The translations under genes and the position numbers were made by a program. From assembly GCA_965603825.1 (NCBI GenBank), contig CBFDEM010000027.1, positions 310,001-374,000 of the forward strand: a stretch of 64,000 nucleotides of DNA, written 5' to 3'. Shown here in pieces: positions 45,116 through 49,572 of the stretch. The stretch's first letter is position 1. Every line of letters starts with the position of its first letter. The notes under the pieces were generated by a model. It was not told the origin of the DNA, did not search any database, and worked only from the letters and a program-made list of their open reading frames with translations. Origin of the DNA: Blepharisma stoltei ATCC 30299. Its lineage: Eukaryota; Protista; Ciliophora.

Positions 45116-46243
45116 ATGGTAGAAGCCGAATTATCTCCAGCTGAAATTGAAAGGTATCATAGGCAGATTCTATTAAGAGAATTTGGTCTTGAAGGACAGA
45201 AAAAACTAAAATCTGCAAAAGTTCTTGTAATTGGAGCTGGAGGACTTGGATCTCCATTACTTTTATATTTAGCTGGTGCAGGGATTGGAACAATTGGAAT
45301 AGTTGATGGCGACGTAGTCGAGACCATTAATCTTCATCGTCAAATTATTCATTCTTCTAACAATTTAAAGATAAATAAAGCAGAAAGTGCAAGGCGATTA
45401 TTGCAAGAATTAAACCCAGAAATTAAGTTGGAAATTTATACACAATGGCTAACTGGAGAATCAAGTGCCAGTATTGTTCCAGGATATGACATTATTGTTA
45501 TTGCGACTGATAACGTAGAAAGCCGATATCTAATAAGTGATTTAGGAGTTTATTATAAGAAACCTGTGATATCAGGTAGTGCGCTTAGGTGGGAAGGTCA
45601 GCTTACTGTATTTTCTCCATCTCCTTGCATAAGATGTTTATTCCCCCAGCCAACACCTCGGCATGCTTGGTCTAAAGCATCAGACATAGGAGTTTTAGGC
45701 CCGATCCCAGGCGTAATCGGCACTCTTCAAGCTATAGAAACAATCAAACTCATCCTTGGGCTACCTGTATTGTCTCGAAAGCTCCTAATGTACGATGGTT
45801 TATCTTGCCAATTTAAACTCTTTCAGCTAAGAGACACAAGTCCCACCTGCCCAGCTTGTAGTGGCCAAATAAATCCTCACACCTTCAACTATGCTGAATT
45901 TCTGGGACAAATTCCAGCTATCCCAAGCATCCCAGACAAGGAAATAAATTGCGCAGAATTAAAAAGATTAATAGAACTAAAAAGAGTGCAAATTATTGAT
46001 GTGAGAAATTCGAATCATTTCAATATTTGCCATATAGAAAACTCAATTCATATTCCAATTCACGATGTAGAAAATTCAAGTGAAATTTTCAGTTCAAATG
46101 AGCCTTTAGTGTTTGTGTGCAAAACTGGAGCAGATTCAGCTAGAGCTGTAGAGAAAGTTGAAGCAAGAGGAATAGAAGCAAGCTACTTGAAAGGTGGACT
46201 TGATGCATGGAAAGAAGCAGAACCGAGTTTTATTATATTTTAA
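45116..46243 (+). CDS. MOCS3: Adenylyltransferase/sulfurtransferase UBA4/MOCS3 (ThiF + rhodanese)
   Basis: ERY.RQ..L, VLVIGAGGLG, NLHRQ, CIRCLFP, CPAC; rhodanese IIDVR...CKTG.DS, GGL.AW. Confidence 0.93.
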   Translation: MVEAELSPAEIERYHRQILLREFGLEGQKKLKSAKVLVIGAGGLGSPLLLYLAGAGIGTIGIVDGDVVETINLHRQIIHSSNNLKINKAESARRLLQELNPEIKLEIYTQWLTGESSASIVPGYDIIVIATDNVESRYLISDLGVYYKKPVISGSALRWEGQLTVFSPSPCIRCLFPQPTPRHAWSKASDIGVLGPIPGVIGTLQAIETIKLILGLPVLSRKLLMYDGLSCQFKLFQLRDTSPTCPACSGQINPHTFNYAEFLGQIPAIPSIPDKEINCAELKRLIELKRVQIIDVRNSNHFNICHIENSIHIPIHDVENSSEIFSSNEPLVFVCKTGADSARAVEKVEARGIEASYLKGGLDAWKEAEPSFIIF

Positions 46244-46504
46244 TTCCGTCGTTTTTAATAAGAAAAATGGTTTATGACATATAAAATATTTTAAGCATGC
46301 ATATGTCAAAAGATTTCATAGAGCCAAAAAACTAAAGATCAGCTGGATTTTAAATGGGAGTAGGGTTTTACAAAAAGAATAAGAATATAAAAAAAAATTG
46401 ATACTTTATCTGATTTCACGAAATTTTAGGTAAACGCAATCCTTTGGAAGAAAAAATTTCTCTTTAGCAAATTTAAGCATTAATTATTATTAGCAAATAC
46501 ACAC

Positions 46505-46576
46505 GGCTCCATGGTGTAAGGGTTAGCACGTGAGCCTACGGAGCTTATAGTCGGGGTTCAATTCCCTGTGGAGTCG
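46505..46576 (+). tRNA. tRNA-Arg (anticodon ACG)
   Basis: Acceptor GGCTCCA/TGGAGTC, D-stem GTGT/GCAC, anticodon stem TGAGC/GCTTA with loop CT-ACG-GA (46538-40), T-arm CGGGG-TTCAATT-CCCTG, discriminator G. Confidence 0.95.
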
Positions 46577-46577
46577 C

Positions 46578-46582
46578 TTTTT
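46578..46582 (+). terminator. Pol III oligo-T terminator of tRNA-Arg
   Basis: TTTTT starting 2 nt after the discriminator base. Confidence 0.7.
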
Positions 46583-47340
46583 ATCTAAGATTCAAACAAG
46601 CAGCAATTTTAAAGAAAATTATTGAAGCCTTAAAAGAGCTAGTCACAGATGTCAACCTTGAAATCAACCCAGAAGGAATCGCTCTCCAAGCAATGGATGC
46701 CTCCCATGTTGCTCTCGTCACATTTTTCCTCCGAGCTTCTGATTTTGAAGAATATCAATGCCACAGAGCTCAAACACTAGGAATCTCTATCTCAAACCTA
46801 TCGAAAATAATTAAATGTGCCGATAATGATGATTCCATCACAATTCGTGCTGAAGACCAAGCCAGCGTCATTACTTTTATTTTTGAAGGGAAAAATGACG
46901 ATAAACTCAGTGAGTTTAATTTGAATCTATTGAGCTTGGATACTGAACATATGGGAATCCCTGAGCAAGAATATGCAGCTGTAATACAACTACCAAGCAG
47001 CGAATTCTGCAGAATTTGCAGAGAACTCAGTCAAATGAGCGATACTTTGAATGTTGATGTAAATAAAGAAAGGGTGGTTTTTAGTGTGAATGGGGATTCA
47101 GGAAGAGGCGCGATTTCGTTGAAACATAGACAGCTTGGAGAACAAAGGACAATTATTGATGTGACAAATGGAGTGAATGCAAGCTTTGCGCTGAGATATT
47201 TGAATTTGTTTAATAAAGCTTCAGTTTTAGGAAGTCAAGCAATCTTGTCAGTGTCAGAAGACTTGCCATTGATACTGAGATTTGACTTTGAGATAGGAGT
47301 GATGAAATATTATTTAGCTCCAAAAATAAATGACGAATAA
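46579..47340 (+). CDS. PCNA: Proliferating cell nuclear antigen; conserved N-terminus present but no in-frame ATG before 46693
   Basis: In-frame FYLRFKQAAILKKIIEALKELVTDVNLEINPEGIALQA precedes MDASHVALV; FALRYL..F.KA; YYLAPKI; TAA 47338-47340. Confidence 0.9.
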   Translation, partial: FYLRFKQAAILKKIIEALKELVTDVNLEINPEGIALQAMDASHVALVTFFLRASDFEEYQCHRAQTLGISISNLSKIIKCADNDDSITIRAEDQASVITFIFEGKNDDKLSEFNLNLLSLDTEHMGIPEQEYAAVIQLPSSEFCRICRELSQMSDTLNVDVNKERVVFSVNGDSGRGAISLKHRQLGEQRTIIDVTNGVNASFALRYLNLFNKASVLGSQAILSVSEDLPLILRFDFEIGVMKYYLAPKINDE

Positions 47341-47728
47341 CTTAATATATTTAAATATGTAATTTTTTACGAGGCAAATTATAGCCAGCAACCTTAAATA
47401 TCCTTATTACCATTATGATACCGATAATTTGGTTCTTTCCGAAATAGCTAACTTCAAAATCGAAAGTAGCAGATATAAAAACCAATAGAGAACAAAATGT
47501 GATGCAATAAAAAATTAAAATAATTTCGTGTAAAATCATCTTCCTTTGCTCAAAAATTATTAGATAGTGTAGACACTATAATTTTTATAAAAAAGAATAA
47601 AAATCATAATTGACTTTTTAGCCTATATTAATAAAATAGTTTATTAATTTATCAATATAATAAAATTAATTATCTGCTTTCTTTATGCGAAATAATTATC
47701 TTGATTTGTGTGATAAAGCTTCATTAAA

Positions 47729-48412: not shown

Positions 48413-49477
48413 TTAAGCAGTTGGATATGAAGGAGTCATGTTGATTCCACAAAGTCCTTTGCCAGTCTGGATTCCGATTCTGATATATCCTTCCTCTCCC
48501 CAGCTTGCGCCCCATGAGTTCTTGACAATCCAATAAGGAGGGCTATTAGTATTATCATATCCTACAATAAGGACACCGTGATCTAGATCAGTTCCGCAAT
48601 CTGCTGTTACAATTCCTCCAGTGTATGACTGCCATGCTCTTTGGTTAGCTTGGACTGCTACTGAAACCGGCTGCTGAGCTACAGCTTGCAATAGAGCGTT
48701 TGAGTTGTTAGGAGATACATTGCTATAAGTAGTAATTTTGGCAGCTATTTGCTTTTCAAGTGACGTATTGCATTGTCCGTTTTTGGCAGTATAAGGGTAA
48801 TTTGCTTCAGTAGTTAAGCCATTGGCAATAGCAAACTTGAAAGCGCTTGTCATAAGTCCACCATTGCAGCCTGCATTTCCATAAGAGGTTGAGCAATCAA
48901 CTAGCTCTTGCTCGGATAGAGAAACAAGGCTATGGCCGCCGAGGAACCAAGCTCCTTCAACTGCTCCTGTTGTGGAGAATGACCAACAGCTTCCACAGTC
49001 CCCTTGATTCTTAACTGCAGTTACTGCGCCTTTTTGTCTCCAATCTACAGTGCTTGGAATGCTAAGGTCTTCGTTTTCTTCAACGAATGGAGAAGCACTA
49101 TATTGAGGGAACTTGTAAGGAGTGTACTTGTTCTTGAATTCTTCTGAAGTCAGGTCAGAAAATTGATTAACTCCGAGAGACCATGATTTTTCTTGGGAGT
49201 TATGAACTCTAGCAAAAGCAGCATTGTCGCGGAAAATTTGGAATCTGGTATGATACTCTTCTGGGGTTGCATAAACCTTTTGGTATTTTGACATAAAGAC
49301 TTGGAACTCTTGTTCTTCCACTTCTAATTCATGTAGAATCAAAGCTGATGGGGAACGAGTATACGCGACAGCAACTGTTGCTATAACTCCAACAACAGCA
49401 AGAAGAGCTAATGCCTGAAAAGCAAGCTTCTTCTTTGAGGAGGTTACTTGGTTTGATGAGATATAAAGGCTATCCAT
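48413..49477 (-). CDS. Cathepsin L-like papain-family cysteine protease (signal anchor + I29 propeptide), 354 aa
   Basis: ERFNIN-like pro-region, GVNQFSD, QGDCGSCWSF, LDHGVL, WIVKNSWG; start likely MDSLY (49477). Confidence 0.96.
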   Translation of the reverse strand: MDSLYISSNQVTSSKKKLAFQALALLAVVGVIATVAVAYTRSPSALILHELEVEEQEFQVFMSKYQKVYATPEEYHTRFQIFRDNAAFARVHNSQEKSWSLGVNQFSDLTSEEFKNKYTPYKFPQYSASPFVEENEDLSIPSTVDWRQKGAVTAVKNQGDCGSCWSFSTTGAVEGAWFLGGHSLVSLSEQELVDCSTSYGNAGCNGGLMTSAFKFAIANGLTTEANYPYTAKNGQCNTSLEKQIAAKITTYSNVSPNNSNALLQAVAQQPVSVAVQANQRAWQSYTGGIVTADCGTDLDHGVLIVGYDNTNSPPYWIVKNSWGASWGEEGYIRIGIQTGKGLCGINMTPSYPTA

Positions 49478-49572
49478 ATTATTATATTTATGTCGCCCGA
49501 CTAATTTAATATAGGCATTAAGAGAATTCATGAGCCAATTTAACTAAAATTTTTAACGTATAAGGTTGGCTA

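Follow-up and report, generated by a model that had tools for sequence, protein, structure and literature searches.

Introduction

Germline-limited genes that are expressed only during development are known from Oxytricha and Tetrahymena. The elimination of a promoter or gene start as an internal eliminated sequence (IES) has so far been an oddity of Paramecium mating-type genes. According to PMC7900874, which cites Singh et al. 2014, the mtA promoter is excised as an IES in Paramecium tetraurelia, P. octaurelia, P. decaurelia and P. dodecaurelia (mating type O). In P. sexaurelia, alternative IES boundaries delete coding sequence of mtA (PMC7900874).

Blepharisma stoltei belongs to the heterotrichs, one of the earliest-branching ciliate classes. 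In the published macronuclear (MAC) genome of strain ATCC 30299, UGA encodes Trp, introns measure 15-16 bp and 25,711 genes were predicted, using a pipeline in which ncRNAs were hard-masked before gene prediction and every CDS was forced to an ATG start. Seah et al. (PMC9942856) described 40,000 IESs in this organism, with a median length of 255 bp, mostly TA-bound and 70% of them intragenic. They include a periodic 65-115 bp class, in which lengths of 72 and 110 bp form the peaks, and their terminal repeats are heterogeneous. For the same strain, 10,048 cryptic IESs were reported, which are minority events seen in ~5% of the reads (SI of PMC9942856).

Here, a window of 64,000 nucleotides from B. 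stoltei ATCC 30299 was analysed (contig CBFDEM010000027.1, referred to as contig 27, of the macronuclear assembly GCA_965603825.1); positions given without a prefix refer to this window. It carries a gene for the DNA sliding clamp, PCNA, which has no start codon.

Organization of the PCNA Locus

The only tRNA gene found in the window is a tRNA-Arg(ACG) on the plus strand, placed at 46505-46577 by ARAGORN and at 46505-46576 by Rfam. The latter match, to RF00005, scores 54.9 bits against a gathering score of 29, the anticodon is ACG and a T-run is present downstream. This run of five T (T5, 46578-46582, plus strand) constitutes the Pol III terminator of the tRNA gene and, at the same time, the apparent “Phe2” codon of the PCNA frame. 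At position 46578, one RNA sample (X1) has an A throughout its cover, reducing T5 to T4, and two others (X2 and X3) have a T, which may reflect different strains or clones.

The PCNA frame is open from 46477 to 47340 and contains a single TGA (46531), inside the tRNA. Its translation reads ...GVAFYLRFKQAAILKK...MDASHV..., also given as ...GVAFYLRFKQAAILKKIIEALKEL...QAMDASHV.... Both domains of the family (PF00705 and PF02747) are present in the expected order (PCNA_N, 2.5e-43; PCNA_C, 1.2e-34), and the match begins at profile position 4. The MAC-retained part of the gene (46587-47340, plus strand) is made of the final base of codon 4, all of codons 5-254 and a TAA stop codon. The somatic form is devoid of codons 1-4 and of any start codon. 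The first in-frame ATG (46693-46695, plus strand), which lies in a G(-3)/G(+4) context, corresponds to the conserved Met40, and the recorded 215-aa model (P0002) begins there. Two other ATGs, at 46511 (ATG GTG TAA) and 46649, are both out of frame. Folding of the RNA over 46427-46700 did not reveal unusual stability (z = 0.98).

These data agree with the initial annotation, which had described a PCNA without start codon with a tRNA-Arg gene ending at the place of Met1 (ARAGORN, Rfam and a frame without in-frame ATG before 46693 all confirm it), a Phe2 codon within the Pol III T-run, a frame open through the tRNA back to 46477 by way of TGA, and an out-of-frame ATG at 46511. The missing start is real and specific, since six of the eight fetched paralogues have MFEA exactly where the window gene has GCT.

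A 112-Nucleotide Segment Missing from the MAC Assembly

The 215-aa product has an exact match in a second assembly, GCA_914767885.1, on contig CAJZBQ010000027.1 (locus L014). This contig measures 997,323 nt vs. 780,130 nt for the contig of the window, and is thus ~30% longer. Over 46230-46720, every base of the window is identical in the alignment with L014, except for 112 extra nt in the latter. Both this alignment and the megablast blocks place the insertion at 46586-46589, the somatic excision junction, where its exact position is made ambiguous by a direct repeat AA (46587-46588). The flanking sequences are ...GCTTTTTATCT on the left and AAGATTCAAAC... on the right.

The insert contains a GGGGCT motif, a 5' leader, an ATG and the first 11 coding bases, its 3' end reading ...GGGGCTTAATTATAAAAATAAAAA ATG TTC GAA GC. 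The resulting germline form is an ORF of 254 aa beginning with MFEARFKQAAILKK (MFEARFKQ), which is full length from residue 1 and has both domains. Its residues 1-254 align to solved PCNA structures, e.g., to residues 1-258 of 1axc (E 3e-73). A rearrangement junction was among the options of the initial annotation, which had also proposed a comparison with micronuclear sequence. Both proved pertinent: 46586-46589 is the point where the ATG-bearing segment is missing, and the germline-scaffold assembly carries the 112 nt that restore the start of PCNA. At the sequence level, the somatic gene is shown to be start-less because this segment of the other assembly is absent. The eliminated DNA belongs to the host gene itself: the last 18 nt of the segment align with the ATG region of the orthologous locus of a related species (L013), the remainder being without recognisable similarity.

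Judged by its structure, GCA_914767885.1 is probably the MAC+IES germline scaffold of Seah et al., given its ~30% longer contigs and its composition of MAC sequence with one insertion per ~0.9 kb. The published MAC reference is filed under a different number, GCA_905310155, and the “micronuclear genome” has a project of its own. In a comparison over 5.2 kb, the window matches the record at 100% identity, apart from six insertions of ~295, 80, 112, 578, 104 and 292 nt. Three of these (~578, 104 and 292 nt) lie inside the ORF of a cathepsin L-like gene (48413-49531, minus strand) and are ordinary intragenic IESs, whose removal restores a frame of 372 aa. Over six loci (~100 kb), 62 insertions were counted, or roughly one in every 0.9 kb of MAC sequence; many of them are TA-, TTA- or TAA-bound, and some are located in ORFs.

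The 112-nt segment resembles a Blepharisma IES in that the germline scaffold has it and the MAC does not, the flanks being identical in both. Its size falls in the 65-115 bp class, as does that of a 102-nt segment described below. A TA-containing terminal repeat is lacking at the window locus, which has AA instead; one further AA-bound insertion was found among those counted over the six loci. It is inferred from these features that the segment is eliminated during development.

A Second Start-Less PCNA and Control Loci

A second start-less PCNA paralogue was identified on contig 20 (G000:C20:541990-542724; L006:1339-1620). Its homology to PCNA starts at about residue 10, the position of Phe2 is occupied by a TAA, and the deposited model comprises 223 aa (P0159). 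A tRNA-Phe(GAA) is oriented head-to-head with it, 58 nt from the expected Met1. At the break, GCA_914767885.1 again carries a germline-only segment, in this case 102 nt long and TA-bound (L121:1825-1926). It supplies ...CCCCCATTATA ATG TTC GAA GCT TTA ATT TCA AAT GGT T (the ATG and nine codons), and the germline form is a 257-aa protein beginning with MFEALISNGLLAKK.

Among the 62 insertions, only the two PCNA segments carry an ATG that opens an ORF of 250 codons lacking an upstream in-frame ATG in the MAC. Removal of a start codon was found for none of the 60 other IES-like insertions of the six loci (~100 kb); the few others that were flagged are intragenic or have their ATG within the ambiguous repeat. 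Similarly, only the tRNA-Arg(ACG) of the window, out of 69 sampled B. stoltei tRNA genes, adjoins a long start-less ORF.

Another of the sampled tRNA genes, a tRNA-Arg(CCT) on contig 18 (G000:C18:162407-164879; L115:1201-1273), is followed by a gene whose ATG lies only 9 nt past the 3' end of the tRNA, in its T-run tail. This is a real gene, with a signal-peptide-like start, MIFLIAFIVSLTISSLAYA.... Unless its mRNA is almost leaderless, it must begin either inside the tRNA gene or before it.

The GGGGCT motif or its complement is located at most 40 nt upstream of the ATG in five out of ten PCNA genes, including both eliminated segments, against a background of 0.0025-0.01 per 40 nt. A GGGGCT(T)AAT-like motif is positioned 10-25 nt before the ATG in the near-identical pair L003/L004, in L005 and L008, and at L013:4975-5000, L014:2858-2883 and L121:1880-1898, the last of these, in the contig-20 segment, being inverted. 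L003 and L004 carry TTGGCGGG, which is E2F-site-like.

The tRNA-PCNA Neighbourhood

In the related species (L013), the same tRNA-Arg is located 372 nt upstream of the PCNA ATG, which is kept. MoeB and a methyltransferase are found further upstream, the latter (L013:3339-4335) being flanked by MoeB and the tRNA. The methyltransferase is missing from contig 27 of B. stoltei, whereas contig 30 has retained it. Contig 30 also holds a second, identical copy of the tRNA-Arg(ACG) (G000:C30:560026-560098), with 87/87 identical nt including 7 nt of flank on each side. The region around it (L009, G000:C30:558526-561598) is a paralogous copy of the block, in which the methyltransferase and tRNA are kept and MoeB and PCNA are lost. 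This pattern on contigs 27 and 30 is one of reciprocal gene loss after a block duplication. Just past the contig-30 tRNA, 15/15 nt match the germline 5' flank of PCNA, followed by GATTCAAAAT; this is a relic of the start region of a paralogous PCNA, without its ATG.

An evolutionary deletion of ~375 nt by microhomology (AAGATTCAAA) had been considered from L013 and the contig-30 copy. It was superseded by the 112-nt germline insert, as the germline spacer of B. stoltei is only ~110 nt long and the contig-30 similarity is accounted for by the PCNA relic. A general linkage of tRNA and PCNA was also rejected, the orthologous loci of the Stentor clade being without a tRNA. In an environmental, heterotrich-like sequence (JGI Ga0194116_10055073; L019:1488-1600), a PCNA with 62% identity and the start MFEARLGQ is separated by 22 nt from a tRNA-Asn(GTT) and its T6 run, which precede it on the same strand.

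PCNA Family and Selection

Nine PCNA paralogues are present in the B. stoltei genome (41,464,486 bases in 64 contigs), and the closest to the window gene is only 64% identical. Identity is higher with the Stentor-type clade (71-74%) and with P0001 (88%), the intact 254-aa orthologue of the related species, which starts with MFEARFRQ. In the maximum-likelihood tree, the window gene groups with P0001 and the Stentor clade with 99/96 support. Its terminal branch (0.068) is not accelerated when compared with that of P0001 (0.055), and is the shortest of the B. stoltei paralogues, except for those of L003/L004. As far as the tree goes, the window gene is the slowest-evolving PCNA paralogue.

Compared with the orthologue in L013, pN amounts to 0.111 for codons 5-39 and 0.091 for codons 40-254, with pS saturated at 0.80-0.83. 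A contig of a second organism, obtained from run X5, is ~95% identical over 46764-47306; 24 of the 25 listed differences are synonymous and one is non-synonymous. The pN constraint towards L013, together with these 24 synonymous changes, indicates that the ORF was under purifying selection until very recently. None of the marks of a pseudogene was found: 250 codons are open, the changes stand at 24:1 and the branch shows no acceleration. The X5 contig begins at 46764, past the N-terminus, and a search for the N-terminus of a closer sister species, using an N-terminal fragment and JGI metagenome loci, returned nothing above 74% identity.

The initial annotation had recommended counting paralogues and measuring selection; the nine paralogues and the 24:1 ratio are the outcome. 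Two of its suggestions do not withstand these data. The gene is not a recent 5'-truncated duplicate, as its best paralogue is 64% identical and it represents the sole orthologue of a PCNA clade that is conserved in heterotrichs. Nor is it a simple pseudogene beside a near-identical intact copy, given the same distance and the fact that the locus is transcribed.

Transcription

RNA contigs were obtained from four runs of one 2022 study by assembly at k=31, and such contigs show neither transcript ends nor strand. The runs are presumably RNA, since cover stops between genes, with none at 46248-46375 or beyond 47400. The contigs are colinear with the MAC sequence (46427-47362, plus-strand coordinates), span both the tRNA and the junction, and terminate 22 nt past the stop codon. 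They comprise 46439-47362 in X1 and 46427-46589, 46560-46670, 46641-46964 and 47032-47362 in X3. A contig of X2 has 76 foreign letters before 46498, which do not represent a real 5' end: they equal the sequence upstream of the identical tRNA copy on contig 30, indicating a chimera formed through the repeat.

The start-less somatic PCNA is transcribed at a moderate level; two other PCNA paralogues are more deeply covered. The IES-minus junction is present in the RNA contigs of three samples, and only the excised form was recovered, in an assembly at k=31 that would clip the ~30-40 nt distinctive of an IES-retaining mRNA. A spliced form linking an upstream ATG to PCNA was not found in the RNA contigs. 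Another PCNA homologue, BSTOLATCC_MAC1470, is named development-specific in the supplement of the genome paper.

In X3 only, a second RNA form lacks 53 nt (plus strand, between 46588 and 46642; 46588-46640, 46589-46641 and 46590-46642 are equivalent placements), with a depth of 13.5 vs. 16.8 for the colinear form. The missing stretch has no GT-AG ends, and its loss breaks the frame and brings the TAA at 46586-46588 immediately in front of the PCNA frame. On its left side, the break coincides with the excision junction. We infer an alternative right excision boundary, a reading that fits the 10,048 cryptic IESs and the alternative boundaries of P. sexaurelia (PMC7900874).

These contigs also bear on the list of options given in the initial annotation. 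Besides the rearrangement junction, the tRNA-overlapping transcript survived, as colinear contigs run from 46427 or 46439 through the tRNA to 47362; introns, a recent truncated duplicate, an assembly error and a 5' end supplied in trans found no support. GT-AG introns at 46516-46550 or 46516-46589, or other tiny introns that would rescue the ATG at 46511, are contradicted by RNA contigs that are colinear and unspliced across 46427-46670. An intron of 15 or 16 nt could not repair the frame either, the required intron size being 2 mod 3. An assembly error is at odds with the same junction in the RNA of three samples. Finally, a 5' exon encoded elsewhere in the MAC was rejected, because neither the 5' region nor the 31-mer after the junction has a second copy in the genome, with up to three mismatches allowed.

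Proposed Elimination of the PCNA Start and Alternative Explanations

Taken together, it is likely that this PCNA gene is intact in the germline and start-less in the MAC through IES-like elimination of the 112-bp segment, and excision would then act as an OFF switch. Situated between the terminator of the tRNA-Arg gene and codon 4/5 of PCNA, the segment would be removed from the somatic macronucleus in the manner of an IES. With it would go the promoter-proximal motif and the 5' leader, as well as the start codon and the first 11 coding bases. Somatic transcripts through the tRNA would then be unable to yield full-length PCNA, as their first AUGs belong to the 2-codon ORF in the tRNA and to the out-of-frame ATG at 46649. 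Conservation of the ORF would be maintained through the intact germline form. This conservation requires that the intact form is expressed somewhere, presumably where the segment remains, i.e., in the developing macronucleus before excision or in retaining copies or clones. In such a scheme, excision would switch PCNA off in a way comparable to mtA promoter excision in Paramecium. Two observations count against it: a clean OFF switch would not need moderate somatic transcription, and the segment is bound by AA where TA is usual for an IES.

Carried further, IES excision may be a built-in switch on two replication-clamp genes, with promoter and start placed on germline-limited DNA. Full-length protein would then be made only in retaining nuclei or lines, e.g., the developing macronucleus, and its expression would be self-ending; alternatively, the switch could underlie a heritable on/off polymorphism, like that of the Paramecium mating types. 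This extension is tentative. The same structure could have arisen by non-adaptive somatic loss, in which a cryptic or new excision, possibly epigenetic, became fixed in a small laboratory stock and was buffered by the seven intact paralogues. The presence of nine PCNA paralogues, two of the others with deeper RNA cover, the large number of cryptic IESs reported and the small effective population of a passaged stock would favour such a loss, as would the atypical AA-bound ends and a residual transcription that looks fortuitous. We nevertheless regard it as rather unlikely, though far from negligible: two separate PCNA genes lose exactly their promoter and ATG vs. 0/60 other IESs, their segments of 102 and 112 nt both fall in the precise periodic size class, and the gene concerned evolves most slowly among the paralogues, synonymous changes prevailing 24:1 without any acceleration of its rate.

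The other explanations attribute a product to the somatic gene or dispense with programmed excision, and all are improbable. A near full-length PCNA could be translated from the IES-minus mRNA by a non-AUG start, at the ATT triplet 46483-46491 or at ACG 46528, with UGA read as Trp. The frame is indeed open from 46477, transcripts cover 46427 onward, the in-frame ATT triplet lies 13-19 nt ahead of the tRNA fold and codons 5-39 are as constrained as the remainder of the gene, yet the intact germline start already accounts for this conservation, and an open frame across 33 codons is expected by chance in about 1 in 3 cases. Moreover, the first AUG opens the 2-codon ORF at 46511, and a TAA stands directly before the PCNA frame in the 53-nt-less RNA form and at the Phe2 position in the contig-20 gene. 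A literature search returned nothing specific on non-AUG initiation in ciliates. A start at Met40 (46693), giving an N-truncated, PCNA-like protein of 215 aa with a function of its own, is less probable still. It would use the first in-frame ATG, in its G(-3)/G(+4) context, and match the recorded product; this model, however, is what a pipeline with tRNA masking and forced ATG starts would deliver. Met40 is conserved in all PCNAs, and the out-of-frame ATG at 46649 comes before it. The initial annotation had held that such a start would drop essential residues; residues 1-39 align with the first strands and the inner helix of solved PCNA structures and are under the same constraint as the remaining ones. 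The faintest prospect is given to an allelic indel, in which the 112 nt segregate in a heterozygous germline and amitotic assortment has left the macronucleus with the deletion allele. This is compatible with the ends not being TA, and with IES prediction requiring only some insertion-bearing reads in a MIC-enriched library. It would demand the same coincidence at the second PCNA, with TA ends and a typical size. The left break is also shared by the 53-nt-less RNA form, which is what alternative boundaries of excision would produce.

Comparison with Known Systems

The “PCNA” models of 215 aa and 223 aa on deposit are artefacts that arise when the MAC alone is annotated with forced ATG starts. 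If elimination of promoter and start does act on two heterotrich clamp genes, this would suggest that exaptation of the elimination machinery for gene control is ancient or comes about easily, and soma and germline could differ in their usable core replication and repair genes. In the literature searched, no report of start-codon-removing IESs in Blepharisma was found, and the term “start codon” is absent from the paper of Seah et al. A genome-wide list of start-codon-containing IESs is computable from public data.

The closest described case is mtA. In both systems, the macronucleus loses a short promoter-region segment from a gene that is otherwise intact, so that the germline copy is whole and the somatic one disabled. 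An mtA-type segment would hold the promoter or TSS and the gene start; the B. stoltei segment contains the ATG and a PCNA-specific upstream motif. The B. stoltei gene differs in encoding a DNA sliding clamp instead of a mating-type protein, and its host is an early-branching heterotrich. In addition, the loss extends beyond the promoter region to the ATG and the first codons, it concerns two paralogues, and start-less transcripts persist. Alternative retained and excised states and maternal inheritance belong to the Paramecium case; the B. stoltei data consist of assemblies of one strain and of RNA contigs.

In the mtA gene of P. sexaurelia and in the cryptic IESs, excision boundaries can move into MAC-destined or coding DNA; the 53-nt-less form, which has its left break at the junction, would be comparable. 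In contrast to cryptic excisions, the excised PCNA form is the MAC consensus and the sole form in the RNA contigs. With the ordinary intragenic IESs of B. stoltei (PMC9942856), the PCNA segments share their restriction to the germline scaffold and the 65-115 bp class, and the contig-20 segment is TA-bound as well. Excision of ordinary IESs restores an ORF, whereas that of the PCNA segment destroys one. Furthermore, the PCNA segment holds sequence of its host gene (the ATG, codons 1-4 and the upstream motif), homologous to DNA that is retained in the MAC of the related species.

Finally, the germline-limited genes of Oxytricha and Tetrahymena resemble this PCNA in that function would be confined to nuclei that still contain the eliminated DNA, so that expression ends at elimination. 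They differ in extent: only the 5' end is germline-limited in B. stoltei PCNA, and >98% of its coding sequence is somatic and transcribed.
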